From IMG/VR virus record IMGVR_UViG_3300018004_000004, positions 124,001 through 188,000 of that record: 64,000 nucleotides of DNA; one strand, 5' to 3'. Numbering within the stretch: position 1 is the stretch's first letter; every line of letters begins with the position of its first letter. A model generated the notes under the pieces. It was not told where the DNA came from. It searched no databases and saw nothing but the letters and a program-made list of their open reading frames with translations. Below are positions 504-60,179 of this stretch, one piece after another. The position numbers were made by a program, and so were the translations under genes.

Positions 504-1193
504 TTACGGACTAGGAATCTTGTATTCTTCAACCAGATCGATAGACTGCTCTGGGTTAGGCGGTCCGCCCACCGTGACATTAATCGACTCTAGGTTCTTA
601 CATTCGAAAGTCTCGATCAACTCAAGTCGAACGTTGTAATCCAGATGACGGAAATGAACTTCTTGCCCGTACTCTCTGGTGAACTGACATGGCCCACGTT
701 CCTCGAATGTCATGTAGTGTACGCCGCGGGCTTTGAAGAAACTAAGGTCAAAGATGTACCGCATCATCATCTTATGAAACCACTTAGTTACTTGGTCGGC
801 ACGCTCGCTTGACAGTGAATGACATACGAAGCGTACGGTCATCATCTCCCACCACGCGATCGTAATCAGCGAGTAGCCTTTCTTGGTCGGGTGCGGGCGT
901 CTTTCTCTTAGCGTCGGTCCTTTAGGGATCCGAAGCCCTTTGGGGTCTGTTGCTGCTCGAACGGACTTTTGGATACCAAAAATGATGACATCGAAACTCG
1001 TATCGAAGTTCCCCAGGTTATCCTTAGGGAACTCAGCCACAAGAATAGGTGCCTTTTGGCCTGGAGGGCCAGCGGAAGCAAGGTGCAGCTTCATAGCCTC
1101 GCCAACCGCATCGAAAAAGGTATCCCAGTCAACGGCAGGGAGTGGTGAGCGGGTCAAGTACAACGGTTGATGTGCTTCATTCGTTGGGCCCAT
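504..1193 (-). CDS. Putative tail completion/terminator-type virion protein
   Basis: About 229 aa from ATG 1193 (GGAG RBS); lies between neck genes and sheath; no diagnostic motif. Confidence 0.45.
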   Translation of the reverse strand: MGPTNEAHQPLYLTRSPLPAVDWDTFFDAVGEAMKLHLASAGPPGQKAPILVAEFPKDNLGNFDTSFDVIIFGIQKSVRAATDPKGLRIPKGPTLRERRPHPTKKGYSLITIAWWEMMTVRFVCHSLSSERADQVTKWFHKMMMRYIFDLSFFKARGVHYMTFEERGPCQFTREYGQEVHFRHLDYNVRLELIETFECKNLESINVTVGGPPNPEQSIDLVEEYKIPSP

Positions 1194-1212
1194 CGACAAA
1201 CTCCATTCCAAC

Positions 1213-1224
1213 CTGATTAGTATA
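1213..1224 (-). promoter_or_regulatory. Conserved 12-mer TATACTAATCAG (candidate phage promoter), copy 1
   Basis: Exact match, intergenic, 20 nt upstream of ATG 1193. Confidence 0.6.
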
Positions 1225-1240
1225 GTAGAATCAAGGACCT

Positions 1241-1876
1241 TTAAACAGTGACCTTCTCACAGCCTAGCTCAAAGAACTCTATGCGGCCGTTGTCTCCGTG
1301 GTGTGCTGTAAGGGTACGTATCCGCCATTCCTCAGTCCTAATCATGGCCGGATCCATCTGCCCATCCGGACCGACTTTAAGCTCGAAAAGCTTATCAGGC
1401 GCCGGGCGGGTAGGAATCGAGTAGCGTTCATAGTCCGGGACGTCGTACCAGAACATGAACGCCAGGCATCTATCGGAGTCCTGGACGCCTATAGGAGAGA
1501 TCTGACCATGCTGCTGAATCTGAGTGGCGCTGCCCAAAACCGAGCCAAAGTTCTTGGCGAAATAGACTGTCTTGATCTCCTCGGTAAAAAGGTAACCCTC
1601 ACCATTGCAGTAGACACAGTTAGGGTCCGGAGAACCATTCTGAACACCAAAAGATAGATAGCACTGGCACTTAGTGTTAGAGAGCTTGCGATAGATCGCC
1701 GGCCGGCCAACACCAGGATCCTCAAAATCACCATTCATAGTACGCGCGAACCACTCACGAAGATCGAATGCAGTCATCTCCGGATAGGCAGTATCCTCGA
1801 ATGAGCCCGAGACGGGTCTATTAGGATTCTGTTGATTGTAGCTCGGCAGACCTTTATTGATGATGATCTGTGACAT
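1241..1876 (-). CDS. Putative neck/head-closure protein with Cys cluster
   Basis: KCQC...DPNCVYCNGEGY motif typical of large-myovirus neck proteins; position in the virion operon. Confidence 0.5.
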   Translation of the reverse strand: MSQIIINKGLPSYNQQNPNRPVSGSFEDTAYPEMTAFDLREWFARTMNGDFEDPGVGRPAIYRKLSNTKCQCYLSFGVQNGSPDPNCVYCNGEGYLFTEEIKTVYFAKNFGSVLGSATQIQQHGQISPIGVQDSDRCLAFMFWYDVPDYERYSIPTRPAPDKLFELKVGPDGQMDPAMIRTEEWRIRTLTAHHGDNGRIEFFELGCEKVTV

Positions 1877-1878
1877 GG

Positions 1879-2625
1879 TTATCCATTGCCTACAAGTGTC
1901 AAGCAAATATCTGCAAGTGTAGTATCCGGTGTGACTGGGCCGTCTATTTCTAGTAGATCAGTAGCAAGAAAAGACGAATCTGAAGCCTGTGTAAACGTCG
2001 CTGTTGTCGCCGACATAGCAAAGTTAGCAGTAGCGAACGGAGCTCCATTCTTACTGAATGTATACGTAGTAGATGCAGTGGCAGCAGCAGACGCAGTACC
2101 TAAAGAAGCAGTAGCACCAGCGGGGAAATCTATCGGAATACCAAGCGGTCCGCGGAAGAGTTTCTGGCTAGCAGTTCCCAATCCCACAATGAATACAGCA
2201 AGAGGCTTAGCAGTTGGACTAACTGATCCAGTAGGACCTGTCGGTCCTGTTGGACCTGTGGCTCCGGTTGGCCCTGTGGCACCTGTTGGTCCAGTGCCTC
2301 CACTTGCACCACTTGCACCTGTGGCTCCTGTTGCCCCGGTAGCACCTGTGGCACCCGTAGCACCAGTGGCTCCTGTTGCTCCTGAAGCTCCAGATGCTCC
2401 TGAAGCGCCGGTTGCTCCTGTCGCCCCCGTTGCTCCAGTGGGCCCTGTATTACCTGTCGCTCCTGTGGCGCCAGTAGCCCCAGCCGGTCCTGTAGCTCCA
2501 GTAGGCCCAGCTACTGTAGGCACATATCCAGAGACGTTACCACTCATATCCGTCTGCCAAGTGATATTGATCTCGGTAGCTGGATGTGGAGGAGCTGGAG
2601 TTGTGCTATTTAACGTGATCGACAT
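1879..2625 (-). CDS. Collagen-like (G-X-T repeat) virion fibre/whisker protein
   Basis: About 30 GAT/GPT triplets plus a C-terminal globular domain paralogous to that of 28276..29232. Confidence 0.75.
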
Positions 2626-13737: not shown

Positions 13738-16422
13738 TTACTCCTTTGGGGCTGGCTTAATGTCCTTGGTCTTCGCTTCGAAGAACAAGATGGCTGAAGC
13801 AGCCTTTGGATCCTTTGGAAGTTTACGTGCGGCAGGAGTTGGTTTCTCCTTGCTATCTTGCACGGTTGTAGAACCATCTGGGTTAAGTTTCGCCTTGTCG
13901 GCTACTTCTTTCGTACCCGCCTCTTGGGGCGTCGGTGCTGATGTTCCACCCTGGAATGTGAAGCCAGACAGCTTACCCAGCTCGTCATCCAGTGCATCTC
14001 TCAAGCTTGCCAGGGAACGCTGTTCTCTTTCCGCTACCTTAGATGTGATCTGGGCATCGGTAAGACCCTGGAAACCTGCTTCTCCGGTGAGCACCTTGAT
14101 TGCTACTAATGTGGTGGCGCGGTCCTTCTTGAGACTCTTCACCAGTACGGTATTCTGTTGCTGCAGAGCATCGACTTCAGCTCTTACTGCTGCCAGCTGA
14201 CCTTCGAGCTTTTCCTGACCGACGATCAGAGTATCATGCTCTTCCTTCGTCAGGAGGATTTCGCTATCCTTTCCACCCTGAGCCATCCCAGGAGCCAACA
14301 GCTTGCGATGATACTCAAGCAGGGATCCGGAGTGCCAGTGTTCGAGGAGGGCGCCAGCCGCACCAACGATGTGGGACTTGCCCTCAGCGTCAGCAGCTGC
14401 ATGTGCCTTGTGGAGTGCTTCGTAGGAACTCGAGCAACCCGTCGGCACAAAACCCTTGCCCATCTCACTCTTGAGACCGGCGCCCACTGTCATCAGGGGA
14501 GCCTTCTTCTCGGCATCCGTCAGGATCACGTCAGGGATAGAGTCTTTGTTCTCATTACCCTTTTCGATCTCCGTCAGACGCTGGTGAGCGTATTCACGAT
14601 CCGACTGGGATTGCCAGTTGCCCAAGTGGGCATACAGATCGTAGCGCATTGCACCCTTGCCCTGGTCATCAGCCTTGTGATAATGACTGTGGAGCGTGTC
14701 CAGGCAAGTCAGTGTATCTGCAGGAACCTTTGCATCATCGAAAGAGAAGAGCTCGACCTTGTGAAGCTCGGCGAGTAGGTTCTTTACCGAGTCGGTCAGT
14801 ACTGGAGTAGGATCTGCATCCTTCTTCTTGCTCTTACTTTCGCAGCCCATTGCCTTAGCCTTGCGGGATACGCAGCCAAGGATCTTGGACTTAGTCGCAT
14901 CACTTACCTTCGCGCGACCGATTAGACGGCGTGCAGCGGTAACGTGTGCACAGTCAGGAACAGGGAAGCTACGGCCCGGGCCACAGAAAGCGGAACCCTT
15001 AAGGCTCTTACGCTTTTCAGTGGATAGCTTAGCATCGGTTAGTATTTCACCGTACTCAGCATCCTCAGCCTTGATAGCATCTTCACTATCCGCCTTTGTG
15101 AACATTTGTTCATACAGGGCGTCTGGGTCCGCGAAGAAGCTGCGTTCATCCTCAGGCAGCTCTTCGATCTTCCAATCCTGATAAGGTGTGAGGCTTTCGA
15201 CATCGATAGCTGGAACTTCCAGTTCAAACTGCTTAGCCTCTTCGGTGATGCGAGCTATATAGTGAGTTCTCGCTTCAACCGACATATCCTGAAGGGTCGG
15301 GATCAAAGCCTCAATCTTGGCTTCTACCTGTTCCTTCGTAATCTTCTTGTCAGCCACGGTCTCCAGACCGTGCTTTTGTATGTGCGACTTCAGAGTTGTA
15401 GAAACCCTGCGCACCATCTCCTTCTCAGGCTCTTCCTTTGGTTCAAGGGCCTTAATCTTGTCGGAGATTTCAGTTGCGCGCTCCTTGGTAAGAGGCGCCT
15501 TATTCATTTCGTCTAGATAGCTCTGCAGTTCTACAAGCATCTCACTGTCCTTGATGTCGGGGTCCGCAACCTGAATATCCGATTCGAACATCTTTCCCAA
15601 GTCAATGCTATCTGCCATTGCATAGGAGGCCAACAACTTAGCTTGGCGCTCTGGACGCATACCCATGAAAAACATCTTGCTGTTCAAGCTGTCCTGGAGG
15701 ATTTCCTTCGAGATAACCTGAGCAAATGGGTCGGCTGGGAAGTTGACGAAGCTCATTTCCTTGTAGAAGAAGTTGCCGGCGATAAGAAACATCTTCTTGC
15801 CGTCAACCATTTCCCCAAGCTTGTGTTCACAGCGATCGTCAGTAGCCCAATCTGTATGGCACGCGGAGCAAATGGCCTGGTCAGTTTGAAAACCAACCGA
15901 GACTGTAAGGTACTCACCTGTGAGCACCTTTCGGATGCCATCTGGGTTGGTTACTTTCAATCCCAACTCGATGTATCCTAGACCTCTATAGTCCTCACGG
16001 GGCTGGAGCTTGTCCAGAACCACATTGATTGACCGATACAGGTCAAGACGCTTTGATGTAGCGTCCGCGAAAAACAACATACTATTGATCTCTGGCACTT
16101 CAGTACGATACTTGTGCGAGGTATCAATATAACGAGCCTGATGGATACGGCCGATCGCGGTCGATTCCTTGTCATGCTCTACCAGAACTGGCTTTAGGGG
16201 CTTATCTGGCTCCGTCCAACGGTAGACCGAGTCTTGCATGCGGTCCGGACGGTAGAAGCGCTGGTTGCCATTGACTATACCAGAGTGGGTAGCCTCAACC
16301 TTTACCAGGAGGGACTTACCTGTTGGCTCCGAGTCATCTCGGCATTCAGCTAGATTCTTTTTGCTGCGGTCGACTTCTTTAACCTTTAGGTTAACGAAGT
16401 CTCGCATGTACAGGAGACCCAT
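13738..16422 (-). CDS. Prohead protease-scaffold fusion
   Basis: N-terminal ATHSG.VN.N.RFY...KPVL.EHD...IGR...LTVSVG...CS.C...E.SFVN.PAD protease-type motifs; acidic coiled-coil C-terminal region; follows portal. Confidence 0.7.
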   Translation of the reverse strand: MGLLYMRDFVNLKVKEVDRSKKNLAECRDDSEPTGKSLLVKVEATHSGIVNGNQRFYRPDRMQDSVYRWTEPDKPLKPVLVEHDKESTAIGRIHQARYIDTSHKYRTEVPEINSMLFFADATSKRLDLYRSINVVLDKLQPREDYRGLGYIELGLKVTNPDGIRKVLTGEYLTVSVGFQTDQAICSACHTDWATDDRCEHKLGEMVDGKKMFLIAGNFFYKEMSFVNFPADPFAQVISKEILQDSLNSKMFFMGMRPERQAKLLASYAMADSIDLGKMFESDIQVADPDIKDSEMLVELQSYLDEMNKAPLTKERATEISDKIKALEPKEEPEKEMVRRVSTTLKSHIQKHGLETVADKKITKEQVEAKIEALIPTLQDMSVEARTHYIARITEEAKQFELEVPAIDVESLTPYQDWKIEELPEDERSFFADPDALYEQMFTKADSEDAIKAEDAEYGEILTDAKLSTEKRKSLKGSAFCGPGRSFPVPDCAHVTAARRLIGRAKVSDATKSKILGCVSRKAKAMGCESKSKKKDADPTPVLTDSVKNLLAELHKVELFSFDDAKVPADTLTCLDTLHSHYHKADDQGKGAMRYDLYAHLGNWQSQSDREYAHQRLTEIEKGNENKDSIPDVILTDAEKKAPLMTVGAGLKSEMGKGFVPTGCSSSYEALHKAHAAADAEGKSHIVGAAGALLEHWHSGSLLEYHRKLLAPGMAQGGKDSEILLTKEEHDTLIVGQEKLEGQLAAVRAEVDALQQQNTVLVKSLKKDRATTLVAIKVLTGEAGFQGLTDAQITSKVAEREQRSLASLRDALDDELGKLSGFTFQGGTSAPTPQEAGTKEVADKAKLNPDGSTTVQDSKEKPTPAARKLPKDPKAASAILFFEAKTKDIKPAPKE

Positions 16423-16651: not shown

Positions 16652-18749
16652 GATCGGTGAGTAGAACCGACATTATGTCGGGATCCGTAGTCTGTGCGAC
16701 TCGGTCTTTCGCCAACTGGCGGAAGGTATCTAGCGTCATTCGATCCTGATTAGTATAGTAAATCCCAGCCTCGTCACGTAGGCAAGTCTCGACGTACTTA
16801 TCGATTACGGCGGCTGAAGCCTTACCCCAGCTGGCAGCCGAGAAAGTACCCTCTGCCTTCAGACGGTCTATTTCAGCCACAAGCTTGTCATACAGGAGGC
16901 TTGGATCCATGGATGACCTTGCAGAATGCGGGTCTAGATTGCGTCCATACTGATTTGCCGGGCGATTCTTGTTGGCAACGGACTTAGCTCCTGCACTGGC
17001 CTTGCTGGGGCCTTTCTTACCTCTCTCCCCAGCTGCCTCTGCACCACGGACATACATGGCTTCAATCATACCCTGGTTCTTCAGCGCGATACCCTTCTGC
17101 TGCAAATCCAGGACATGCAAGTTATAGTGAGTCAACTGTGCATCCTTCTTGGTATAAGGAACACGCTGCAGTTCACGACGAGCTTCGTCTTCACTGAGCA
17201 AATGGTTGTTGAACAGCTCGATAACGTGATTCTGCCACTTGATGTGACCATCAACGTCAACGTCTGGGAAGACAAGGTCTACGTCTGCAAGAGCATTCTG
17301 AACAGAGAGGTTAGTTGGATTCTCTTCGAACAGCTCCTTGAATATGAACATCTTGAACTGGCCGCAGAACCAGTTAAGATCGGACTTCACGGAATCCTTC
17401 AAGTTCTGAGAGACGTTCTCGGCTGTAGCGCGGTTGCCGGTATCAGTCTCACCCATATCAATAGGCGATACACCCAGGCCAGTAAAGATACGGGCCTTGT
17501 AATGCTTCATGATCTCGGAAGGATCCGGAGCTTCACCTTTGATACCAACGACGTCTACGGCGACACGTTCGTCAGTGATGAATACACCTTCTTTAGGCAT
17601 ATTCTCAAGCTCTGCCTTGATAAGGTCGACTTCTGTGATCCCGTCAACCAACATGGTAGCGGGTGCATCCTCTGAACCGACCTTAACATGAAACAATGGG
17701 AAAAGGTGGTTAATGAGGAGCATTTCCACATTTTCTTCAAGACGGCGGAGAGCAAAAATATCGTCTCGCACGGATACGGTACGCGGGGTTCCATAGACAT
17801 GTCCTGGCTTGACGTCCCATCTGAAATGGACAACGTCTTCCAATCTGTAGTCCTTATACTTGCGCGCGGAGCCGTAGTAACGGCGCCACTTGATGATCTC
17901 ACCCTTCTGGTTAACGAACGGGAAGATAGAGTGAGGAGGTAGAATCATGTAGGCAGCTACAGGAGTCTTATCATCATTCTTCTCATTTGGTTCGCCGCCG
18001 GAAGCTTCTTCATCACGGATCTTCAGCAAGAAACAGTTCGAGATAATGAGCAAGTTGTAGAGAATGTCCTTGATGAAGTTCTCTGTAGTCATGCCCATCA
18101 TGTAGCCAATCTGATTCATACGGCTATTGACGTACTTAGTAAAGCGTGAGTTCATGCCCTCAATCTTGAAGCCCTGGCGGAACATCAAGGAGTGCTTGCG
18201 CTTTGTGGCCTGCATTAGATACGCTTCGGTATCGATCATTGTGAATGGTTCATACTGATCGTACTCAGGCAGAATCGTACCATAGTGGCCGTAGTAGCTA
18301 TTGAGATAATCCTTCTCTTGTTCGATCTTCTTGCGGATCTTCTTCTCAAGCTGTGGTAGATCTTCGGAACTCGGTGCAGCGTCAAGCAGCTTTATCACAC
18401 GATCAAACGAGGCTCTCTCTTCATCCCTATCTTTCCATGTGAAAGCATCCTTTGACTTAGGCTCAAGTGGAGTGCAGTTACGGAAGAGGTCATACGCACC
18501 GCGGATGCGCTCACCTACAGTCAGCTGATGAATACTGTGCTGACTACGATCGCCAAGACCAAGAATGATAGGATCGAGGTTCTTCTTGCTCTTCTTCATG
18601 TCTACAACAGCGAAGGACTTGCCGTAAACCTGGCCTCTCTTCTTGCGCTCGAGATTGTCGATACGCAGTTGTAGATTGAGAGCCTTCTGCTCTTGCAAAG
18701 TGATGAGAGGCTCCTCAACAGGTTTGGTTATCTTCTTAGCCTTAGGCAT
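16539..18749 (-). CDS. Portal protein
   Basis: 736 aa; DVVHFRWD...YGTPR..SVRDDI.ALRRLE and IFTGLGVSPIDMG..DTGNRATA portal-type motifs; between TerL and protease. Confidence 0.8.
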   Translation of the reverse strand: MPKAKKITKPVEEPLITLQEQKALNLQLRIDNLERKKRGQVYGKSFAVVDMKKSKKNLDPIILGLGDRSQHSIHQLTVGERIRGAYDLFRNCTPLEPKSKDAFTWKDRDEERASFDRVIKLLDAAPSSEDLPQLEKKIRKKIEQEKDYLNSYYGHYGTILPEYDQYEPFTMIDTEAYLMQATKRKHSLMFRQGFKIEGMNSRFTKYVNSRMNQIGYMMGMTTENFIKDILYNLLIISNCFLLKIRDEEASGGEPNEKNDDKTPVAAYMILPPHSIFPFVNQKGEIIKWRRYYGSARKYKDYRLEDVVHFRWDVKPGHVYGTPRTVSVRDDIFALRRLEENVEMLLINHLFPLFHVKVGSEDAPATMLVDGITEVDLIKAELENMPKEGVFITDERVAVDVVGIKGEAPDPSEIMKHYKARIFTGLGVSPIDMGETDTGNRATAENVSQNLKDSVKSDLNWFCGQFKMFIFKELFEENPTNLSVQNALADVDLVFPDVDVDGHIKWQNHVIELFNNHLLSEDEARRELQRVPYTKKDAQLTHYNLHVLDLQQKGIALKNQGMIEAMYVRGAEAAGERGKKGPSKASAGAKSVANKNRPANQYGRNLDPHSARSSMDPSLLYDKLVAEIDRLKAEGTFSAASWGKASAAVIDKYVETCLRDEAGIYYTNQDRMTLDTFRQLAKDRVAQTTDPDIMSVLLTDLVSNYFEETHAEESTESSPDQGPEAEHDERSSASGNE
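16746..16757 (-). promoter_or_regulatory. Conserved 12-mer TATACTAATCAG, copy 2 (inside portal 3' region, upstream of the head operon)
   Basis: Exact match; shares TACTATACTAATCAGG with copy 1. Confidence 0.55.
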
Positions 18750-23439: not shown

Positions 23440-26244
23440 TTACTCGTAGACCACAAGAACGTTGCAGTTGGCTGTTGTGATTGCCAGCTCCAAGCCTGTA
23501 TAGAATGGGATCTCTTTCAAGTCCACATAAATAACGCCTGGGTTTGCGCCACCGCCGGTCGGGATAGCCCCTGATGCCCACAAAATCGTTCCTGAAGCCG
23601 CCGTATTATCGTATAACGTAATCGCAGCATTGTTCGTGATGTTGCTGATAACGATAGAGCGTAATGCTCCGGCTCCAATCTTCAAGTTGATACCAGCAGT
23701 TGTACCTGACTGGAAGAAGGAGATAGGAGCTGTTGAATCGCGCCCTTCACGAAGAATGGAAGCATCCCAAACTTCCAAACTTGCTGATGTGCTAGCTGCT
23801 GTACTTGTTGCCCAAGCATTGATTGGGAAGATAGGTATCTGATAGAGAACGCCTGTCGTCGGAGTGACCGAGTGAACGAGCAGGTTGTCTACGAAGAAGT
23901 AGGCGCCTGTCACACTGTACTGAATCTCATACAGATGGACGTTCGTGTCCAGAACGAACTGACTAACTACACCATTGAAGGAGCCAGATGTAACTGTCTG
24001 TATGCTGGTGGCATGTACAGTGTTGATTTGGAGCTGGCCGGAAGCGTTCACAGAAAAGTAACAACCGTTCTGTGGAGCAACAGTGGACAAGGTAACAGCT
24101 CCCCAAGCACGGAGAGTGTTAGCAACTGTGACTGCTGTCAGTCGGACGTTGGCTGCGAAAGCCAGAGGATGCGAGTGGATATAACGCCCGCTACGAACGG
24201 AAGTCAGCTTGCCATATGCACTAGCAGCAGTACCACTAGTAAGTGTAGCAATGGAGTTCGCCACACCAGCAGCAGAACCTGTCCCGCTGTTTGCCACTGT
24301 CCAAAAGTTCGTGTCCACAGAGGCAGCAAAAGGTACACCCACGACCTTGTAAGGCTGGTTGACAGCCAGAGTGTGGGCAACATTAGAAACGACTGGGAAG
24401 CCGTCCTTATCTGCAATACCTATGATTGACGTGCGCAGGTTGCCATTGATATCCAGCGAACGAGGAATAGCCTCGATCATCGGGGCAGCGAATGTTTCCA
24501 GACGGAATGTTGTGGTTGTAACTGCGCCATTGTTGGTGACGCGCACGCGATAACTCTTACCAACTGCCTGAACTGTGAGACCGAAAGACTTGCCCGGGAC
24601 ATAGGTATAAGAGTCTGTTACATCGAAGTGCGTACCATCACCAGACTGATCAATGAAAACCGTGCAGGTCTGGTCAGAGAAGAACATCACCTGGATGGCA
24701 CCGACGCCCAGAGCATTAGTTGTCGTACCAGTGAATGTGGCGCCTGAACCTATGTTAGCAGCAGATGTGTTGTTGGCATCCGCTGTGATATTCTGAATAG
24801 TTGAAACAGCCAAACATACATCGCCATCAGCATCTATATAATGATCGTAAGACGCTCCGTTATCTGCATAGAGCTGAGCAGCTACAACCTTGGAAACTGT
24901 CTGGTCTGCTGGTGTGGTGATCGAAGCTGCGATGGCAGCGAGATTGCCACCTGTCTCTTGTGCAGCATTGGCAGGCAGAGGAAGTGCGGCTGCTGTGATA
25001 GCAACGTTCCCACTATCGTGAACAGGAAGAGGATTGGTGAGGGCTGCTGCAACTGCTGAACCGATAGCTGCTGCTGTTGGAGGAGTTAGGGTTGTAACCT
25101 GAGCAGTTGGAAGCGGATTTGTAGCTGGGTTGCTTACGATTGCCGAAGCAATAGCTGCTGCTGAAGGCGCAGCAACTGCTGCTCCGATTGCAGCCGCAGT
25201 GGGAGGCGTAATAGCACTGATTGTACCAGCACTCAAACTGACTGTGCCGCTAACCACACCGTTGAATGTTGTGGGAGGGTTGGAAACTATAGCAGAAGCG
25301 ATTGCAGCAGCAGACGGCGCAGCAACAGCAGCACCAATGGCTGCTGCTGTCGGAGGAGTAAGAGTTGTGACTTGTGCTGTAGGAAGAGGATTGGTAGCCG
25401 GGTTGGAAACAATGGCTGCTGCAATAGATGCCGCGGTCGGAGGCAGAGTACCAGCGATAGTAGAGAGATAACCTTCTGCGATTGAATCTTGAACTGCGAA
25501 TGTTCCTGCGTTCGTGACTGCGATGGACTGACCAGCAGCCAGTGTGACGTTCGGGAGAGCCAGGACGTTAGCATTGACGCCAATGACCGTCTGTCCGGTA
25601 GGAGCAGAACCCCAAGTAGAAGGAGTACCAAGATTGACGCTATCCCATTGGGTGATGTTGTTCGTGCCGGTAACCGTACCGGTAAATGTGCCCAAGACGC
25701 GAAGGTTGCCGTTTAGATCGGTGGACAGAAGGACTTCATTGCCCTCAGTGTAGAGAGGAGCAAGGTTGGAAGCCTTGGCGGTGAGAGCACCGACGTTGTT
25801 ATTGCTTGGAGCCTGACCGTTGCTGGTAAGAGTTCCTACAACTGTCTGCTGTGCCGAGAAGTTGTCGATAACAACGTGGTTGCCCGTGCTGTTGCCGATC
25901 GTGCTCCACACATCGAACTGTGTGCCGCCAGCGAATGCTGTGACATTGAGACGATAGAAACCCCCTTCGCTACAAGTCGCTGCGAGCATTGGTTGGGAAA
26001 GGGGAGACCACGTATCCACGACTTCCCAATAAGCTTGTGCTCCCAGAACTGGGGTAAACTCGAGGTTGATAACGATGTTCGAGAACGTCCCGACAACATT
26101 GTAGAGCCCAAACACAAAGTTTCCAGGCTCCCCGTGAAAACGGGGAACAGAATCCTTCACAAAGTATTGAGTGCTTGGACCTGTGCCAGTCACCCCTGTG
26201 AGGATGGGAACGATTGTGCCGCGAACTATGTTGAGTACGCTCAT
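23440..26244 (-). CDS. Long tail fibre/spike-like protein with Ala-Pro repeats
   Basis: 934 aa; repeats of PPTAAAIGAAVAAPSAAAIASAIVSNP; beta-rich lectin-like C-terminal region. Confidence 0.6.
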   Translation of the reverse strand: MSVLNIVRGTIVPILTGVTGTGPSTQYFVKDSVPRFHGEPGNFVFGLYNVVGTFSNIVINLEFTPVLGAQAYWEVVDTWSPLSQPMLAATCSEGGFYRLNVTAFAGGTQFDVWSTIGNSTGNHVVIDNFSAQQTVVGTLTSNGQAPSNNNVGALTAKASNLAPLYTEGNEVLLSTDLNGNLRVLGTFTGTVTGTNNITQWDSVNLGTPSTWGSAPTGQTVIGVNANVLALPNVTLAAGQSIAVTNAGTFAVQDSIAEGYLSTIAGTLPPTAASIAAAIVSNPATNPLPTAQVTTLTPPTAAAIGAAVAAPSAAAIASAIVSNPPTTFNGVVSGTVSLSAGTISAITPPTAAAIGAAVAAPSAAAIASAIVSNPATNPLPTAQVTTLTPPTAAAIGSAVAAALTNPLPVHDSGNVAITAAALPLPANAAQETGGNLAAIAASITTPADQTVSKVVAAQLYADNGASYDHYIDADGDVCLAVSTIQNITADANNTSAANIGSGATFTGTTTNALGVGAIQVMFFSDQTCTVFIDQSGDGTHFDVTDSYTYVPGKSFGLTVQAVGKSYRVRVTNNGAVTTTTFRLETFAAPMIEAIPRSLDINGNLRTSIIGIADKDGFPVVSNVAHTLAVNQPYKVVGVPFAASVDTNFWTVANSGTGSAAGVANSIATLTSGTAASAYGKLTSVRSGRYIHSHPLAFAANVRLTAVTVANTLRAWGAVTLSTVAPQNGCYFSVNASGQLQINTVHATSIQTVTSGSFNGVVSQFVLDTNVHLYEIQYSVTGAYFFVDNLLVHSVTPTTGVLYQIPIFPINAWATSTAASTSASLEVWDASILREGRDSTAPISFFQSGTTAGINLKIGAGALRSIVISNITNNAAITLYDNTAASGTILWASGAIPTGGGANPGVIYVDLKEIPFYTGLELAITTANCNVLVVYE

Positions 26245-31893: not shown

Positions 31894-32256
31894 TTACCAC
31901 TTGAAATACGCTATGATATTACTTCTATTGCTTTCAGCCCAACCTGCCATGACATTACAGTAAGTATGCAAGAGCTTCCTAACTTCTCCAGTTTCATGGT
32001 CATGATCAACACAGCACTTAGATATAGCTTTTGGAAGTGGTTGGTGACAAAAGCCACATAACCCATGCTGTTCTTTATACATACACTCTTTGTCTTCGAG
32101 CGTAATACCGTATCTCTGCTTCAATAAAGAACTAGCATGCACACGTTGACCCTTTTCAGTCTGACGGTACGCTCGCTTTGCCTTTCTCGCAGCTTCCCTA
32201 CCTTTATCAGACGAAAGGTATCGTTCTTGGGCTTGTTTTGCAGCCTCACTTTTCAT
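31894..32256 (-). CDS. Endonuclease VII-type homing endonuclease
   Basis: RYGIT......EQ.GLC..C....VDHDHETGEVR.LL...CN. Confidence 0.85.
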   Translation of the reverse strand: MKSEAAKQAQERYLSSDKGREAARKAKRAYRQTEKGQRVHASSLLKQRYGITLEDKECMYKEQHGLCGFCHQPLPKAISKCCVDHDHETGEVRKLLHTYCNVMAGWAESNRSNIIAYFKW

Positions 32257-32276: not shown

Positions 32277-32288
32277 CTGATTAGTATA
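32277..32288 (-). promoter_or_regulatory. Conserved 12-mer TATACTAATCAG, copy 3
   Basis: Exact match, intergenic, 20 nt upstream of ATG 32256. Confidence 0.6.
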
Positions 32289-32295
32289 GACAGAC

Positions 32296-38118: not shown

Positions 38119-38130
38119 CTGATTAGTATA
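38119..38130 (-). promoter_or_regulatory. Conserved 12-mer TATACTAATCAG, copy 4 (head of the late arm)
   Basis: Exact match in the divergent intergenic region, about 150 nt upstream of the first minus-strand gene. Confidence 0.6.
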
Positions 38131-38358
38131 GATTAATCCCGATCGGCGAGTAGGTGTTGTGATTGGCCGGCGGTTTTGCCGTATCTGGGAGGCCAACATG
38201 CGAGCTGGAATGGCAAAATGGTGCATGACCAGGTGAAGAGAGTGTGAGACTCTTCTCACATTTTGTTTCGAGCCCACCCCGTTCTATCTGAGATCTGGGT
38301 TATCCCTAGTCCCATATAGATCAGGTAGGTGGGTAACTCTAGAACAAGGAGACTTACA

Positions 38359-39902: not shown

Positions 39903-39947
39903 AAGTGCAGCAGGCATGGCGCTGTATGAGTCCATGCACAAGGAGTA

Positions 39948-42860
39948 GTGATGAATCAACGTTACCACGTTGTATTCGAAGGAGAGAATAAAGTAACAAC
40001 TCGCCGTCCTTGGAAGGGACGCGGTGTTGAGCTTTATTCCTCCAGCGGTGATCCAGCAAGAGGCATACCAGCGATGTTTGGTTCTCATGAAGTGCGTCAG
40101 TTTCTTGAGAACCTCGGGCCATTCATCGTAGCATCGATGGACAATCCCGCAGTCGCAGCTCAGATCCTTGATGAAGGGTATGTGGTAACAGACCCTGATT
40201 CAGGTGCGAAGAGCAAGTGGTATGTTGGTGGTTATTTCGTCCGCGACGACGGTGCAGTGTATATCATGCTGCCCGAAGTCACAACCGATGCCCAGTTTCG
40301 TTCTAAGCTGGGTTTGCATATTGACCTAAACGATCAGTGGGGCAATAGCTTCAAGGTAGGTAAGTATCTGAAGCGCTTGTTCTCACATCATCGTAAGTTC
40401 ATGCAAGGTGAAGTCGTGAAGGAGCTCGACAATGTCGTGCTCGTACGGCTGAAGAGTGGCAAAGTGATCAGTGTGAAATATGCTGATCATGGCGCGCTCA
40501 CAGATGGCATGAACCTCGTGTCAACACATTGCATGAAGCTCATGGGTCTTAACAAGACCATGGGTGCTGGCCTTAGGATCACGGCGTTGAGTCCTAAGGG
40601 ATTCAGCAAAGGCCATGCGATTGTACTGCCGGAGCTGCAGCATGATGTCGTGCTGTTCAACTCTAAGAAGCTGCTGACAGGTGATCAGTTCACCTTCGGC
40701 ATGGATTGGTTGCATAGCGGTGCAGTATTCACTGATATGCAATCAGTCATTAACTTCAGGTTCGCAAACACCAGCTTCTTGTCGCAGTGGGACAAGGAGT
40801 TTCTGGAGACAGTAGTCGATGCTATTGAAGATGAGGATAAGCTGAAGCGTATGCTTCAGTTCTATCATGTGGAGTTCCACAAACAGCGGGACGATGACGG
40901 AGACATGCAGTTCATTCAGAAGGACAAAGAGTGGGCACTGTTGCGTGCATTGCGCGGTGGTGTGAAGATTCAAGATCACCCAGCGCTTGTGCGTAAGGTG
41001 TTCCATCTATTTGCCGACAAGGTTCGCAACTGCGAAACCAACATTCGTGTGCCTATACCTGAGACAGCAGGTGGTGCACGTTATGCTTTGGTTGATCCTA
41101 CCATCTTCGATATGTGGGGTGATCCCACTCTCGAAGGTACTCTGAAGAATGACCAGGTATATTGCGCTGGCGATGTTGGCAGCGTGGTATTCCACAGGCA
41201 GCCGAATGCGCATCGTGACGAGCATTATATCGCGCGCGCAACAAGCAATGAATATCTGAAAGCTATGGACACTGGATGTTTCATGTTCATATCCAAGGAT
41301 ATCATCAAGCCAAGCCTGGCCAAGCTAGGTGGTGGTGATCAGGATGATCGCCTTGTGTATTACAAGGACCCAGCAGTTGTGGAACACTTCAGGCAACTGG
41401 AGCTGGATCCATATCCCACAGTGCCTCTGGTTGAGAAGCCAGAGCCACCAAAGCGTTCCAATGCATTTGCACACAGACTGCATCGCACACCGATCTATGA
41501 TCGGACTCAGCTGCTGATGATGTTGGATCAGATGAAGAACCAGAGTCTGCATATTGGCTTCGTTGTTAATGCTGGTATGCATGACACTGTGCTGACGGAT
41601 AATAGGGCAGAGATCACCAGGAATCTGGAGGCTCTGCCAAAGACACTGAAGAATCAATCTGCCTATGAATGGTTCACAACCAAGTATCAGAACTATACGC
41701 TGCGTGAACCAATGTCCAGGTTGGAGTTGGTCATTGACGCGGTCAAGAAGACTGGTGCTGATCTGGCTGGTATTCGTGACCAGGTGAAGAAGTTCAATGA
41801 CACATTCGAAGTCGTGGCTGAGTTCATGACGCGCGGCGGTAGGTATGATGGGAGAATCCCATTGTCTCGCCGCGGTGACAGCCATCCAGTTATGGTCCGT
41901 ACCATTGTGGATGATAAGCTGGATGAACTCAAGCGACTGAGGCAAGACCTGGAAGATATCATCACTGATATCTCTTGGCAAATGATACCGCCAGTGGCGG
42001 AGGAAATACTGACATGCCCGTGCTATGAAGAGCAGGCGACTCAGCTGGCGTATGCCATGCGTCAGGAGTATCGCAATCAGTGGGCCAATCTGAGTAAGGA
42101 GATTGAGCGCACTGGTGACAAGGCAGAAGTAAAGAAGACCATAGATGCGTACATGAAGATCGACAAGGCGATGTATGAGCGCTTCGCTCCACATCCGCTG
42201 ATCATCGATGCCATGGTCAAGCTGTATATCATGGTGTATGAATCCAGGAAGCCAGAGGCGCCAAGGGACGAAGATGGTCGTCCTATTAAGTTTGGTGATG
42301 GTATCCTCTGGGGCCCGAGAATGTCCGGCCTGACCCTGCGCATGATGGAGCGCGCAGGGCTGGCTGGGCGGTTCACTGAGATCACATTCGAGGATGAAGT
42401 CAAACACCTCCGTAAGGAGAGCCTCGATGTGGTTATTGATCAGGGTATTGTACGCCAGGAGGGTACCAATATCTTGGTGGGTACCATTGACCCAATGGCC
42501 GATGGTGCTAAGAAGGCAGAGAAAGGATGGGTGAAGGTGGCAGCAAGGGATGCATATCCCTATGAACCAGAACCCAGGTACATGATCCTGCGAGTAGTTA
42601 ATGGCATGCATGCCAAGGGTGCGTCTCCAGTTGAGATCGCACAGTGGCGTGATCATGCTAACGAACAGGTCGAACTAGTTCCTTTCATCTGGACGAACCC
42701 GGAGAATGAAGAAGAACACGCAGTTCGCGTGGTGCTCAATGGCCAGGATTATGGCTATATCGATCGCAAGGACAACACGTATGTCACTGAAAAGACTATG
42801 GGTTGGCTATTGCCGGGCACAACACCAAAGACCATGGGAGTATTGGTCTATGAAAGGTAG
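39948..42860 (+). CDS. Putative single-subunit two-barrel RNA polymerase (YonO/cellular RdRP-like)
   Basis: 970 aa; ordered motifs LTDGMNLVS, LRI...KGFSKG, FHRQPN, LGGGDQDDR, matching the TDG..IS, R...KG, R.P and GG.D.DGD motifs of QDE-1-type RdRP/YonO. Confidence 0.7.
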   Translation: MMNQRYHVVFEGENKVTTRRPWKGRGVELYSSSGDPARGIPAMFGSHEVRQFLENLGPFIVASMDNPAVAAQILDEGYVVTDPDSGAKSKWYVGGYFVRDDGAVYIMLPEVTTDAQFRSKLGLHIDLNDQWGNSFKVGKYLKRLFSHHRKFMQGEVVKELDNVVLVRLKSGKVISVKYADHGALTDGMNLVSTHCMKLMGLNKTMGAGLRITALSPKGFSKGHAIVLPELQHDVVLFNSKKLLTGDQFTFGMDWLHSGAVFTDMQSVINFRFANTSFLSQWDKEFLETVVDAIEDEDKLKRMLQFYHVEFHKQRDDDGDMQFIQKDKEWALLRALRGGVKIQDHPALVRKVFHLFADKVRNCETNIRVPIPETAGGARYALVDPTIFDMWGDPTLEGTLKNDQVYCAGDVGSVVFHRQPNAHRDEHYIARATSNEYLKAMDTGCFMFISKDIIKPSLAKLGGGDQDDRLVYYKDPAVVEHFRQLELDPYPTVPLVEKPEPPKRSNAFAHRLHRTPIYDRTQLLMMLDQMKNQSLHIGFVVNAGMHDTVLTDNRAEITRNLEALPKTLKNQSAYEWFTTKYQNYTLREPMSRLELVIDAVKKTGADLAGIRDQVKKFNDTFEVVAEFMTRGGRYDGRIPLSRRGDSHPVMVRTIVDDKLDELKRLRQDLEDIITDISWQMIPPVAEEILTCPCYEEQATQLAYAMRQEYRNQWANLSKEIERTGDKAEVKKTIDAYMKIDKAMYERFAPHPLIIDAMVKLYIMVYESRKPEAPRDEDGRPIKFGDGILWGPRMSGLTLRMMERAGLAGRFTEITFEDEVKHLRKESLDVVIDQGIVRQEGTNILVGTIDPMADGAKKAEKGWVKVAARDAYPYEPEPRYMILRVVNGMHAKGASPVEIAQWRDHANEQVELVPFIWTNPENEEEHAVRVVLNGQDYGYIDRKDNTYVTEKTMGWLLPGTTPKTMGVLVYER

Positions 42861-49124: not shown

Positions 49125-49261
49125 CACTCGAACAGTTCGAGGGGATCCTTGCTTTGTTCTTTGTCCTGTATTTGCTCTTGCGCGCCAGGCGCAAAGAGTT
49201 AGGACTCAAGGATCACCTAGATCCAATGCCATGGATTAGGAAGCACATCTTCCCGGAGTGA
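49121..49261 (+). CDS. Small membrane peptide (46 aa)
   Basis: GTGA overlap; MTLEQFEGILALFFVLYLLLRARRK... Confidence 0.45.
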   Translation: MTLEQFEGILALFFVLYLLLRARRKELGLKDHLDPMPWIRKHIFPE

Positions 49262-49275
49262 GAAAGGAGGTCATC

Positions 49276-50889
49276 ATGGACAAGAAGGAAATGGCTGATG
49301 AACTGATCTATGCTATATTCCAAACCCTAAAGAATCATGCGATTAACTTCTTGCTTGATGGCCTTGTTCTCAAACCGTTATCCAAATCGATTGCTGCTAA
49401 GATGCAGCCCAGCCCGTATAAGGGAGCGAGCGCATTGTTATCTGCTCGCATGATGTCCAAGAAGACTGTTGATGGTGCCATCCTTGAGGGCCCAACAGAG
49501 GCAGGCTATGCCAAGTATGCTATTCGCAAGGGCATGCCAGGCCCAGGACAGAAGAGATTGGCAATCGAGAATGAACCGCACACCGTTGATGATTTTGATG
49601 GTGTGATTGAGGAAGGCTATGGCAAAGGCAAGAAAGAACTCATCTACACAGGCCAAGCCGCCATCAAAGTTGGAGAAGAAAGATTCCTCGGCAAAGTCAA
49701 CATTCATAAGCACACTGCTGACAAAGCCGGGCTCCACTGGGATTTTGTTGCGGAAGGCGTTAAGCCTGGGACACAGCAGTTCGAAGTTAACATCCCTACT
49801 GGCCGATGCAAAGGACGCTATGCCTTTGTTACCACGGCCAAAGGCATGCTCATTACCCGCCTCAAGGACAGGAGCGTCCTCATCGAGAAGCCGACATTCC
49901 ATCTCAAAGGCGAAGACCTTCTGAGAGAGCTCGACAAGAATCCCAGTGGCACAATAGCAGAGTGGAAACCAGATGGTTCACTCGCGAATGTGGCCATTAG
50001 TGGGCAACGGGCTATCTTTAGAAGTCATCGGGATACAGGCGAACCTTACTACGATAAACTGCCAGGACTAGAAGATCTGAGCAACCGTAGTGGATTCCTA
50101 TCCAATCGCCTGTTCTTCCCGGGACCCAACCTGGATGGAACGGTGTTACGAGGGGAACTGTTCCATCCAGAAGGGGCTGCTCGAGTTGGTGGTATTCTGA
50201 ATAGCATGCCGGACAAGGCTATTCAGTTCCAGACAGAGCATGGCCCAGTGACATTCATTGTATGGGACGAGCTGAAGCACAATGGCAGAGATATATCCAA
50301 GCTGCCTTACGCAGAGAGGAGAGCGATCTATGTCGCGGACGTCAATAGCATTCGACACTTCAACGGGCTTTGGTCGTACGTGCCAGCTCGTACCCGAGCT
50401 TTCCTTTCGTTTTACAGGGATATCGTCAACGATCCTCGTGGCCTGCCCTACGCCGAAGGTATTGTCCTCAAGGATGGAAGTAGCCCAGCTGGTGAACCAT
50501 GGCGCAAGGTCAAGTTCCGCGACACCGTGGATGTCAAGATTGTTGATGTTCTTGAGGGAACTGGTAAGTACGAAGGATCGGCCGGCAAGCTTCTGGTTCA
50601 GACAGCAGGAGGAGGACGCGGAGAAGTTGGTTCTTTCGCCATGCCTGATTGGCAGCGAAAGCAGATCCTGATTGATAAGGATCTGGTCAAGGGGCAGGTG
50701 ATTGAGATCTATGCCCAAGAGATAACCAAGGCTGGTGCTCCGCGCGCTGGTGTCATGCTGCGATTCCATCCAAGCAAGAGCGAGTATGCATTCGATCTCG
50801 AATCGAAAGCTATTGCTGATGTGGATGGCAGGACACCAAATGAAGTGAAGTATGCAATGAAGACAGCCGCAGGCTGGAGGAAGAAATGA
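49276..50889 (+). CDS. lig: ATP-dependent DNA ligase with N-terminal rearranged LigD-type phosphoesterase domain
   Basis: Motif I EWKPDG, III LRGELF, IIIa FIVWD, IV EGIVLK, V WRKVK, then OB domain; upstream PE motifs KRLAIENEPH...FDG.I..GYG.G and KH...GLHWDF. Confidence 0.85.
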   Translation: MDKKEMADELIYAIFQTLKNHAINFLLDGLVLKPLSKSIAAKMQPSPYKGASALLSARMMSKKTVDGAILEGPTEAGYAKYAIRKGMPGPGQKRLAIENEPHTVDDFDGVIEEGYGKGKKELIYTGQAAIKVGEERFLGKVNIHKHTADKAGLHWDFVAEGVKPGTQQFEVNIPTGRCKGRYAFVTTAKGMLITRLKDRSVLIEKPTFHLKGEDLLRELDKNPSGTIAEWKPDGSLANVAISGQRAIFRSHRDTGEPYYDKLPGLEDLSNRSGFLSNRLFFPGPNLDGTVLRGELFHPEGAARVGGILNSMPDKAIQFQTEHGPVTFIVWDELKHNGRDISKLPYAERRAIYVADVNSIRHFNGLWSYVPARTRAFLSFYRDIVNDPRGLPYAEGIVLKDGSSPAGEPWRKVKFRDTVDVKIVDVLEGTGKYEGSAGKLLVQTAGGGRGEVGSFAMPDWQRKQILIDKDLVKGQVIEIYAQEITKAGAPRAGVMLRFHPSKSEYAFDLESKAIADVDGRTPNEVKYAMKTAAGWRKK

Positions 50890-55300: not shown

Positions 55301-55374
55301 CTGGGCAGGAGTTTAACCGTTCTCCCTGCTCGGCAAAAATAGCTGGGGTAGATGCCGACTAGCTCTACCCCAGT
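55301..55374 (+). terminator. Two tandem hairpins after the 412-aa gene
   Basis: GGGCAGG/CCTGCTC, then AGCTGGGGTAGA/TCTACCCCAGTT. Confidence 0.45.
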
Positions 55375-55386
55375 TATACTAATCAG
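55375..55386 (+). promoter_or_regulatory. Conserved 12-mer TATACTAATCAG, copy 5 (plus strand)
   Basis: Exact match, 29 nt upstream of ATG 55416. Confidence 0.6.
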
Positions 55387-59970: not shown

Positions 59971-60179
59971 TGCCAATCATACTTATGCTGATTTCTTATT
60001 GCCTCCCCAGAAGAAATATAAAGACGTTTCTTTCTGGACAACTGCCACCATCTAAGTGGGATGATACCTTGCCAGTATGGAAGAGATACAGAGCGAAGTA
60101 CTCACAAAGGACCTTACAAGCTATTCATCCGAAACCTCCCATTGATTTGGAACCTCTTTGGGAAGATGTGGAGGTGTAA
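59967..60179 (+). CDS. Small hypothetical protein
   Basis: 70-aa ORF coupled to neighbours. Confidence 0.35.
   Translation: MMPIILMLISYCLPRRNIKTFLSGQLPPSKWDDTLPVWKRYRAKYSQRTLQAIHPKPPIDLEPLWEDVEV

Follow-up and report, generated by a model that had tools for sequence, protein, structure and literature searches.

The 64-kb stretch of DNA analyzed here (the window) encodes what is likely an active two-barrel RNA polymerase of a clade with a contracted metal-binding loop, carried by a phage of roughly 215 kb; no biochemical data exist for any member of this clade. The gene product was assigned to the single-chain RNA polymerases of the two-double-psi-barrel (DPBB) superfamily, within the QDE-1/RDR/YonO branch. 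The fold and the family link are shown, and the activity is inferred.

The polymerase is encoded by a plus-strand ORF (39948..42860) that reads through without an internal stop. The listed ORF start is GTG 39948, and ATG 39951 is the very next codon. Because an AAGGAG at 39940-39945, read directly from the sequence, precedes this ATG with a 5-nt spacer, and because the identical database protein P0001 is 969 aa long, ATG 39951 is most probably the real start and GTG 39948 a mechanical one. The 970-aa plus-arm ORF reported in an earlier note on this DNA is thus intact, but its product is probably 969 aa. Residues are numbered here from the ATG, so that D464, D466, and D467 in the GTG count of that note are D463, D465, and D466. 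The frame and the motifs were kept in 50 homologs at 26-100% identity. A 443-aa antisense ORF (41325..42656) was rejected as a shadow ORF; antisense stop-free stretches in the homologs range from 158 to 802 aa.

39940..39945, plus strand: Shine-Dalgarno sequence AAGGAG, 5 nt before ATG 39951 (read from sequence)
39951..42860 (stop included), plus strand: polymerase gene, 969 aa, single-subunit two-barrel RNA polymerase (ORF, P0001, fold, and sequence links to RdRP/RDR2/QDE-1)

Searching Pfam, PHROGs, and PDB sequences directly with the window protein, and GenBank phages by tblastn, returned nothing meaningful; the protein gave no hit to the Pfam RdRP model (PF05183) and so fell short of its gathering threshold. 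The link to RdRPs emerged only through homologs, profiles, and structure, not from the window protein itself. The homolog P0038, the best-scoring of those detected, reached 40.8 bits against the Pfam RdRP cut-off of 23.8, and at the E-value limits used the model detected 8 of 38 close and 4 of 48 distant homologs. The kinship with Pfam RdRP is therefore real, yet the window polymerase lies beyond the reach of the model. A profile built from family alignment A2 matched RDR2 (E 1.1e-5) and QDE-1 (E 1.2e-4), and the alignment brought DG..IS, KG, R/K-x-P, and GGDxD(G)D into register.

Structure comparison gave the same assignment over nearly the full length of the protein. The AlphaFold (AF2) model of the window polymerase had a pLDDT of 88.3 and a pTM of 0.77. 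When it was compared with the PDB by Foldseek, maize RDR2 (E 1.6e-16) and QDE-1 (E 2.6e-16) were matched across about 900-950 columns, followed by P74 gp62 and P23-45-type gp64 (E 5e-8 to 2e-7). Foldseek assigned a probability of 1.00 to RDR2, QDE-1, and the P23-45-type RNA polymerases (RNAPs), and multisubunit RNAP largest subunits appeared only at E values of about 0.04-0.1. Among viral models, matches were found to uncultured phage proteins (E 8e-17), to a protein annotated "RNA dependent RNA polymerase" (E 3.6e-13), to A7KVB1 (E 1e-10), which we take to be a Bacillus phage 0305phi8-36 protein, and to P23-45 gp64 (E 2e-8); crAss-type models matched weakly (E 5e-3). The two-DPBB fold of the superfamily is met by these model matches, although the barrels were not traced residue by residue. 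The earlier proposal of a two-barrel RNA polymerase, made from sequence alone, thus held.

The four motifs on which that proposal rested were all confirmed at their positions, and their sharing with QDE-1-type RdRPs (as DG..IS, KG, R/K-x-P, and GGDxD(G)D) held in the HMMER alignment to RDR2 and QDE-1. Conservation counts refer to the 105 near-full-length sequences of A2, which extend down to ~20% identity. The features of the polymerase are as follows.

40497..40523, plus strand: barrel-1 motif LTDGMNLVS, containing D185 (HMMER vDGmslIS aligned to RDR2 sDGiGkIS)
40572-40613, plus strand: motif LRITALSPKGFSKG (read from sequence)
40608..40613, plus strand: K220-G221, the invariant KG of SPKGFSKG (K220 is K in 105/105; aligned to the KG of RDR2)
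40665..40667, plus strand: K239, second near-invariant barrel-1 lysine (K in 101/105)
41190..41207, plus strand: FHRQPN, R-x-P motif of barrel 2 (R416, R in 100/105; P418, P in 103/105)
41325..41354, plus strand: metal-binding loop LGGGDQDDRL (D463 at 41337-41339, D465 at 41343-41345, D466 at 41346-41348)
41736..41738, plus strand: D596, a further Asp that is nearly invariant and has no assigned role, in the conserved helix LELVIDAVKK (D in 104/105)

In the two-barrel superfamily, two invariant lysines and one acidic residue come from barrel 1. Position 185 is Asp in 87 and Glu in 9 of the 105 sequences (D or E in 96/105), and the adjacent G186 is Gly in 103; D185 probably corresponds to QDE-1 D709 and Rpb2 D837, a structural equivalence that is inferred. 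K220 may be the catalytic lysine of barrel 1, a role inferred from its conservation and its alignment with RDR2, and K239 is inferred from conservation and order to be the equivalent of the second lysine of Rpb2. D185, K220, and K239 are conserved in the right order for Rpb2 D837, K979, and K987, and DG..IS and KG align to RDR2; this rests on alignment only, without a structural one-to-one match. A literal D-D-D-G-D at residues 314-318 (40890..40904, plus strand), which had gone unnoticed in the earlier note, is a decoy in a variable acidic loop. It was rejected as the catalytic loop because it is not conserved in homologs and because residues 314-316 form the only segment of the model with a pLDDT below 50.

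The Arg/Pro feature that lies upstream of the metal loop in the superfamily is present as FHRQPN, which aligns to R-S-P in QDE-1, K-N-P in RDR2, and R-S-P in YonO. The Arg of this motif makes contact with the incoming NTP at its ribose (PMC7708050). The retention of this Arg bears on the possibility that the protein, like archaeal PolD, is a two-barrel enzyme that makes DNA. In favor of this, PolD shows that such a core can alter its acidic motif and make DNA (PMC7708050), and its DP2 subunit is a precedent for a changed motif (NxDGD). However, DP2 differs in a residue and not in spacing, PolD lacks R-x-P and has PHT in place of the ribonucleotide-selecting Arg kept here (PMC7708050), and no PolD chain was found among the 50 best PDB fold matches. 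We regard a PolD-like DNA polymerase as highly improbable.

The metal loop departs from the superfamily pattern. The D-x-D-x-D (DxDGD) loop of barrel 2, with three metal-binding Asp residues, is described as common to all two-barrel RNAPs (PMC2919709, PMC7708050). The window polymerase does not meet this spacing: the three Asp residues are kept and the Gly position is deleted. HMMER aligned the loop to GGDLDgD and GGDYDgD (RDR2/QDE-1) with the canonical Gly as an insertion, and hhalign, independently of HMMER, placed the same one-residue gap at the canonical Gly of the YonO DNDGD loop. D463 and D465 are Asp in all 105 sequences and D466 in 103, the remaining two being alignment gaps. The loop is predicted with good confidence (mean pLDDT of 87 for residues 461-470). 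Among the best 150 of 298 family representatives, whose loops were inspected, every representative covering the loop had G-[G/A]-D-x-D-D except for one 382-aa fragment with a degenerate loop (P0130), and none had DxDGD.

The departure from a spacing described for all two-barrel RNAPs (PMC7708050, PMC2919709) could be taken to mean that the protein is degenerate or repurposed, for example as a non-catalytic nucleic acid binder with a broken metal loop. Against this, the 105 sequences, although only ~20% identical, show little or no variation in the three Asp residues, R-x-P, the two lysines, and the barrel-1 acid, which argues for selection on catalysis, and the sole degenerate loop seen belongs to the P0130 fragment. 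A degenerate enzyme is thus very improbable. The earlier note had read the loop as D-Q-D-D-R instead of D-x-D-G-D, which held, and had left open whether this marks a divergent clade or a degenerate or repurposed enzyme, a lack of conservation of the Asp cluster among homologs being taken to refute its reading. Aligning the homologs revealed a conserved cluster. Since D-x-D-D is invariant clade-wide and the Gly deletion appears in both alignment programs, the divergent clade is supported and the degenerate option rejected: D-x-D-D is a clade signature, not decay, with one residue fewer at the canonical Gly. As for the "shifted third carboxylate" that the note had suggested, the one-residue contraction is shown, and its geometry is inferred only from sequence.

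This clade is large. A whole-library profile search yielded the 298 representative clusters at E<=1e-3, and at 50% identity the visible members fall into at least about 110 clusters. No member was found in 50,697 GenBank phage records, and 185,579 reference genomes, scanned twice, yielded no relatives, although both scans were limited to narrow peptide patterns and absence is unproven. No description of the D-x-D-D variant was found in the literature searched. Within the searches made, the D-x-D-D RNA polymerases are thus a large clade known so far from metagenomes only. One distant subgroup (P0050) sits in a Planctomycete-like chromosomal context. The source phage of the window polymerase is uncultured.

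Only a few small ORFs precede the polymerase gene in the early/replication arm (plus strand), which diverges from the structural arm (minus strand) and also carries DNA ligase, endonuclease VII, and RNase H. Five further phage loci have their RNAPs, which are 27-61% identical, at the equivalent divergent-arm position. No sigma or other transcription factor was identified by PHROGs in the window; since only 64 of ~215 kb are visible, the remainder of the genome may encode further polymerases or sigma factors. A scan for sigma-70 promoters and terminators around the polymerase gene gave counts no better than those of shuffled sequences, and tRNA and Rfam scans of the window found nothing. A 934-aa ORF (23440..26244, minus strand) with D-A-D-G-D followed by a hydrophobic strand was considered as a second, canonical polymerase and rejected as a chance match, because it has Ala/Thr/Ser-rich repeats typical of fibers and surface proteins and no family match.

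The company of replication genes, together with the nearest relatives, raises the possibility that the protein is primarily an RNA-dependent enzyme, or a maker of primers or R-loops for replication, and not a phage transcriptase. Such an enzyme would copy RNA into dsRNA or supply short RNAs for DNA replication or counter-defense. Its nearest structures and profile matches are the eukaryotic RdRPs RDR2 and QDE-1, and QDE-1 uses both RNA and DNA templates (PMC9508822). On the other side, the phage enzymes of this branch that we checked in the literature, YonO (PMC5467207) and P23-45 gp64 + gp96 (PMC10770324), are DNA-dependent transcriptases; no RdRP-based RNAi pathway is known from bacteria; and a conserved gene-proximal motif points to phage-specific promoters. 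We consider an RNA-dependent or primer-making role unlikely.

The conserved motif is the 12-mer TATACTAAyCAG, a candidate promoter. It occurs 13 times in 152 kb from six related phages, against 0.16 occurrences expected from shuffles. All 13 are co-oriented with genes; most lie in the structural arm, and the usual distance to the following ATG is 9-25 nt. The motif is absent from the bacterial-context locus and from SPbeta. Its occurrences in the window are listed below.

38119..38131, minus strand: CTATACTAATCAG, promoter-like element that heads the structural arm, within the divergent region (motif scan)
32277..32289, minus strand: CTATACTAATCAG, preceding the ATG of gene 31894..32256 by 20 nt (motif scan)
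16746..16758, minus strand: CTATACTAATCAG, located in the 3'-terminal part of the portal gene, ahead of gene 13738..16422 and the major head protein gene
1213..1225, minus strand: CTATACTAATCAG, in the intergenic space that separates gene 1241..1906 from gene 504..1211
55374..55386, plus strand: TTATACTAATCAG, plus-arm copy that immediately follows a 10-bp hairpin and precedes ATG 55416 by 29 nt

The enrichment and orientation of this candidate promoter are shown; its use by the window polymerase is inferred. The motif includes TATACT, which agrees with the sigma-70 -10 hexamer at five of six positions, so an alternative is a T4-like late promoter with a -10 element only, to which a phage factor would direct host RNAP. 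The two-barrel enzyme would then read another class of genes (early/middle, as P23-45 gp64 does) or no window genes. The distance to the ATG fits a start ~7 nt after the hexamer, and the late genes of P23-45 are transcribed by host RNAP (PMC10770324). However, no -35 element is conserved, and the six bases 3' of TATACT are as strictly conserved as the hexamer, which is atypical of sigma-70 sites; nor was a sigma-like protein found in the window, although most of the genome lies outside it. On balance we lean slightly against the host-RNAP explanation.

Under the preferred reading, in which the motif serves the two-barrel enzyme, the gene would probably be transcribed early by a different polymerase, either that of the host or one carried in the virion, because so few small ORFs precede it in the early/replication arm. 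The enzyme would then probably transcribe phage genes from phage-specific promoters, the best candidate being TATACTAAyCAG ahead of genes mainly in the structural arm. In GGDxDD the third carboxylate directly adjoins the second, with all three retained. Since R-x-P, the two lysines, and the barrel-1 Asp/Glu are all kept, the most likely chemistry is the ordinary two-metal mechanism of nucleotidyl transfer, in which only the third ligand would be re-shaped, catalysis being inferred. In QDE-1, the third Asp coordinates cation A only (PMC9508822). Catalytic activity, a DNA template, the class of genes transcribed, and ownership of the motif are inferences only. The earlier claim of a phage late RNAP is accordingly supported as to the RNAP; DNA dependence and the late role are inferred, the latter from the analogy with YonO, the gene position, and the candidate promoter motif. 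The template choice is left open because the best structural matches are RNA-dependent enzymes.

Among known systems, RDR2/QDE-1 (PF05183) are the most similar, as single chains of ~950-1000 aa with two DPBB barrels, a near-full-length fold match, and the motifs DG..IS, KG, R/K-x-P, and GGDxD.D in the same order. They differ in having GGDxDGD instead of GGDxDD, in being eukaryotic and not phage-encoded, and in sharing merely 10-14% identity with the window polymerase. YonO of SPbeta is also a phage-encoded single-chain two-barrel RNAP and, by analogy, likely a functional counterpart as a transcriptase. Its sequence similarity is very weak: hhalign against the single YonO sequence gave E 0.08 with A1 and E 3.1e-4 (39% probability) with A2, covering only R-x-P and the loop. 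YonO has a DNDGD loop and 839 instead of 969 aa, and it comes from a temperate prophage of Firmicutes, whereas the scans of reference bacterial genomes turned up no member of the D-x-D-D clade. P23-45 gp64 (P74-26 gp62) is another phage single-subunit two-barrel RNAP, made after infection and using a short phage-specific promoter motif (PMC10770324), but it has ~590-616 aa, a DxDxD signature, a query-normalized TM-score of ~0.3, and no detectable sequence similarity to the window polymerase. The crAss-like phi14:2 gp66, a two-barrel single-chain phage RNAP, has a loop (DFDxD) whose fourth position departs from DxDGD (bioRxiv 10.1101/2020.03.07.982082). It keeps the D-x-D-x-D spacing, however, is far larger, and is packaged in the virion; the window polymerase gene, by contrast, lies outside the structural arm.

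A bolder reading, which we regard as possible, is that this mostly viral clade is the closest relative in the prokaryotic world of the eukaryotic RNAi polymerases, with a D-x-D-D site, acting without factors from a 12-nt promoter (TATACTAAyCAG) shared across phages whose polymerases are only 27% identical. Those polymerases are the nearest relatives of the clade by both sequence and solved structure, which makes it a candidate for their long-discussed origin in phages. D-x-D-x-D has been treated as a truly universal feature of the polymerases that transcribe cellular genomes and as a search signature; the P23-45 study screened virion proteins for exactly this signature. The D-x-D-D clade would mean that the active site tolerates a re-shaped third ligand and that signature-based searches overlook such enzymes. 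A 969-aa polymerase with a short candidate promoter may also serve as an orthogonal transcription tool, and would offer an experimental handle on the gene expression program of a large uncultured phage lineage.

The ORF at 39948..42860 (+) comprises 970 open codons. Its second codon is an ATG at 39951, which follows AAGGAG (39940-39945) after a 5-nt gap, and a database protein identical to the window polymerase (P0001) has 969 aa; translation was therefore assigned to start at 39951. Residues are numbered from this Met, so that D464/D466/D467 of the earlier note become D463/D465/D466. The ORF and the four motifs listed in that note were confirmed from the sequence.

Polymerase motifs in the window
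40497-40523, plus strand: LTDGMNLVS
40572-40613, plus strand: LRITALSPKGFSKG
41190-41207, plus strand: FHRQPN
41325-41354, plus strand: LGGGDQDDRL

A literal D-D-D-G-D at residues 314-318 (40890-40904, +) was rejected as the catalytic loop, being a variable, low-confidence acidic stretch; a scan for the active site by motif would be drawn to this decoy. An antisense 443-aa ORF within the gene (41325-42656, -) is probably a shadow ORF, and antisense open stretches in homologs range from 158 to 802 aa. Residues ~150-179 (window ~40398-40487) gave sub-threshold matches to the Myosin_N SH3-like domain in 17 of 38 family members, suggesting that the N-terminal part contains a small SH3-like barrel.

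Alone, the polymerase retrieved nothing useful from Pfam, PHROGs, PDB sequences, or 50,697 GenBank phage genomes. A large protein database yielded 50 homologs (26-100% identity), mostly unnamed or "hypothetical." The Pfam RdRP family PF05183 was reached by eight of 38 homologs, best by P0038 (40.8 bits, cut-off 23.8; residues 304-490). AlphaFold2, run on the 38-sequence alignment, gave a confident model (mean pLDDT, 88.3; pTM, 0.77). The model's closest Foldseek matches in the PDB were maize RDR2 (E 1.6e-16), Neurospora QDE-1 (E 2.6e-16), and Arabidopsis RDR2 (E 4.8e-14 to 6.7e-12), followed by the Thermus-phage RNAPs P74 gp62 / gp64 (E 5e-8 to 2e-7) and the largest subunits of multisubunit RNAPs (E ~0.04-0.1). 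The alignments to RDR2 and QDE-1 spanned ~900-950 columns, and their TM-scores were 0.40-0.47. Among viral models, matches were an uncultured Caudovirales protein (E 8e-17), a protein annotated "RNA dependent RNA polymerase" (E 3.6e-13), A7KVB1 (E 1e-10), which we take to be the YonO-like protein encoded by Bacillus phage 0305phi8-36, and P23-45 gp64 (E 2e-8). A profile of a 105-sequence alignment also reached solved structures by sequence (RDR2, E 1.1e-5; QDE-1, E 1.2e-4), and HMMER paired vDGmslIS with sDGiGkIS, KG with KG, and RqP with KnP or RsP. The earlier claim of a two-barrel RNAP from a divergent DxDD clade is supported; it would have been refuted by a structure lacking two double-psi barrels, a condition that does not arise with the predicted fold, which matches RDR2, QDE-1, and phage RNAPs.

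The earlier note had left open whether the DxDD loop marks a divergent clade or a degenerate enzyme, and had proposed checking its conservation among homologs. GGGD[Q/Y]DDR was invariant in the 38-sequence alignment; P0050, an outlier at 26% identity, has NGADFDDS. When 1.84 billion representative proteins were searched with a profile, this returned 298 clusters at E<=1e-3, 108 of them at E<=1e-30. In the best 150 of the 298, aligned to the family HMM, every loop-covering sequence read G-[G/A]-D-x-D-D followed by a beta strand, except one 382-aa fragment with a scrambled loop, and no DxDGD was found. Residue conservation was counted in the 105-sequence MAFFT alignment, whose members are ~20-27% identical to the window protein. 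K138, K220, D463, and D465 were conserved in 105/105 sequences, R142 and D596 in 104, D466 (the other two being alignment gaps) and P418 in 103, Q264 in 102, K239 in 101, R416 in 100, and D262 in 97; position 185 was D or E in 96. HMMER placed the family "GGgDmD.D" opposite "GGDLDgD" and "GGDYDgD" of RDR2/QDE-1, the canonical Gly being an insertion relative to the DxDD clade, and in the HHalign alignment with SPbeta YonO (NC_001884; E 3.1e-4) the Gly of DNDGD likewise faced a gap of one residue. Given this clade-wide conservation and the gap at Gly in both alignments, the DxDD loop is the canonical metal loop shortened by one residue and kept under strong purifying selection. The divergent-clade alternative held and the degenerate-enzyme alternative failed.

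In QDE-1 complexes, all three Asp hold cation A, the first two hold cation B, and the barrel-1 Asp D709 touches cation B via water (PMC9508822). Since the first two Asp retain their spacing, we infer that the cation B site should be unchanged and that only the A-specific third ligand would shift, one position closer. The loop region of the AlphaFold2 model has a pLDDT of ~87. Neighboring Asp pairs bind catalytic metals in motif C (GDD, YxDD) of right-hand polymerases; by analogy, these offer a chemical precedent for DxDD, not homology. The R of R-x-P contacts the incoming NTP ribose in multisubunit RNAPs, and PolD, a DNA polymerase, has another residue in its place (PMC7708050); the polymerase keeps this Arg, and RNA synthesis is therefore favored.

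The DxDGD loop is described in "all two-barrel RNAPs" (PMC7708050), with three Asp among eight superfamily-invariant residues (PMC2919709). Archaeal PolD (NxDGD) and crAss-like virion RNAPs (DFDxD) depart from the canonical loop but, unlike the DxDD clade, keep its spacing. We found no description of a DxDD variant of two-barrel, RdRP, or phage RNAPs in the literature searched in full text; as coverage was partial, this amounts only to absence of evidence. In jumbo-phage surveys, YonO-like enzymes appear solely for 0305phi8-36 and phage c-st (PMC7824862). For four representatives drawn from different subgroups, tblastn gave no match in GenBank phages, the DxDD clusters looked up came from metagenomes only (unnamed or "hypothetical"), and the Pfam RdRP model detects just ~10-20% of clade members. 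Fold and chemistry are known; on this evidence we regard the clade-wide active-site architecture as new. The P0050 cluster, a distant DxDD subgroup (133 member sequences), lies among Planctomycete-type chromosomal genes on contig Ga0453630_0002249 (locus L008), and the clade is therefore not exclusively viral. Neighbors there include PSCyt1/PSCyt2/PSD1, DUF1501, an ECF sigma, and a Ser/Thr kinase, and runs of small ORFs flank the polymerase homolog, which could be a cellular copy or a small integrated element.

The window DNA is phage and its gene layout is as follows.

Gene layout of the window
~500-38,000, minus strand: minus arm, structural genes
10582-11946, minus arm: major head protein
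16539-18749, minus arm: portal
20773-22836, minus arm: large terminase
from near 38,330, plus strand: plus arm, with five small ORFs, the polymerase, then many small ORFs
49258-50889, plus arm: ATP-dependent DNA ligase
59376-59870, plus arm: endonuclease VII-type HNH protein
60061-60708, plus arm: RNase H-like protein

The minus arm also encodes a head-decoration protein and collagen-like proteins; long 9-nt-period repeats (Gly-X-Y) occur in genes 1879-2625 (-) and 28276-29232 (-), one of which is confirmed by Pfam Collagen. A 934-aa Ala/Thr/Ser-rich protein (23440-26244, -), which carries direct repeats (25046-25434) internally and a DADGD that arose by chance, had no family match and one weak match, in an uncultured 595-kb phage; it is likely a fiber or surface protein. 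The phage is jumbo-sized: the identical polymerase gene, with the same spacing of neighboring elements, lies on a 215,395-bp IMG/VR contig, and contigs of homologs span 159-219 kb. The closest terminases in deposited phages (Moorella phage MTATph1, Acinetobacter phage ME3, and Bacillus phage 0305phi8-36) are 25-30% identical.

Two neighbors of the polymerase gene were seen in relatives only. In a related 218-kb phage (L003), a 131-aa protein with an RlpA-like DPBB_1 domain is encoded just upstream (9454-9849, +), and no counterpart was recognized in the window. In L007, the genome of a relative with a 27%-identical polymerase, a 90-aa protein (13266-13538, +) with a weak GerE / sigma-70 region-4-like HTH match overlaps the polymerase stop codon; it might be a specificity factor, and the window yielded no equivalent.

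A short element recurs in the window.

Copies of CTATACTAATCAG
38131-38119, minus strand: exact, head of minus arm
32289-32277, minus strand: exact, minus arm
16758-16746, minus strand: exact, minus arm
1225-1213, minus strand: exact, minus arm
55374-55386, plus strand: one mismatch, single copy in plus arm

The four exact copies all lie on the minus strand of the minus arm, a count reached in 0/100 shuffles; their flanks lack conservation. The 12-13-mer (C)TATACTAAyCAG is conserved in the related phage loci L003, L006, L007, L009, and L010, and 13 matches to TATACTA[AG][CT][CT]AG fall in six phage loci (152 kb) versus 0.16 in shuffles. All point the same way as the local genes, and the distance to the following ATG is usually 9-25 nt. 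A bacterial-context locus and SPbeta contain none. Inferred from sequence alone, this promoter-like element may be a phage-specific promoter. It could be read by host RNAP with a phage factor, given the likeness of TATACT to a -10 box; the window, which leaves out two thirds of the genome, yielded no sigma-like protein. We lean only slightly toward the inference that the phage polymerase itself reads it.

Two hairpins were also observed. One (55345-55373, +; 10-bp stem, CTGGGGTAGA...TCTACCCCAG) directly adjoins the plus-arm copy of the TATACTAATCAG element, perhaps as a terminator-promoter junction. The other, in the divergent region upstream of the plus arm (38244-38277, +), consists of GTGAGA-CTCT-TCTCAC followed by TTTCGAGCCCAC; the 12-mer is shared unchanged by L003, L007, and L009, and the hairpin seems to retain its pairing through two-sided changes (TGGGA/TCCCA in L007). 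It occurs once in the window, matches no tRNA or Rfam family, and is a possible early promoter or regulatory RNA element.

In six independent phage loci, with RNAPs 27-100% identical to that of the window, the polymerase gene lies 3-6 small ORFs downstream of the divergent intergenic region and heads the arm opposite the structural (minus) arm. The late, DNA-dependent role proposed in the earlier note is plausible, though inferred. T7 RNAP is made early and then takes over. The gene position in the six loci fits a similar scheme, in which the polymerase would be an early product that later takes over part of the expression programme, as with YonO and P23-45 gp64.
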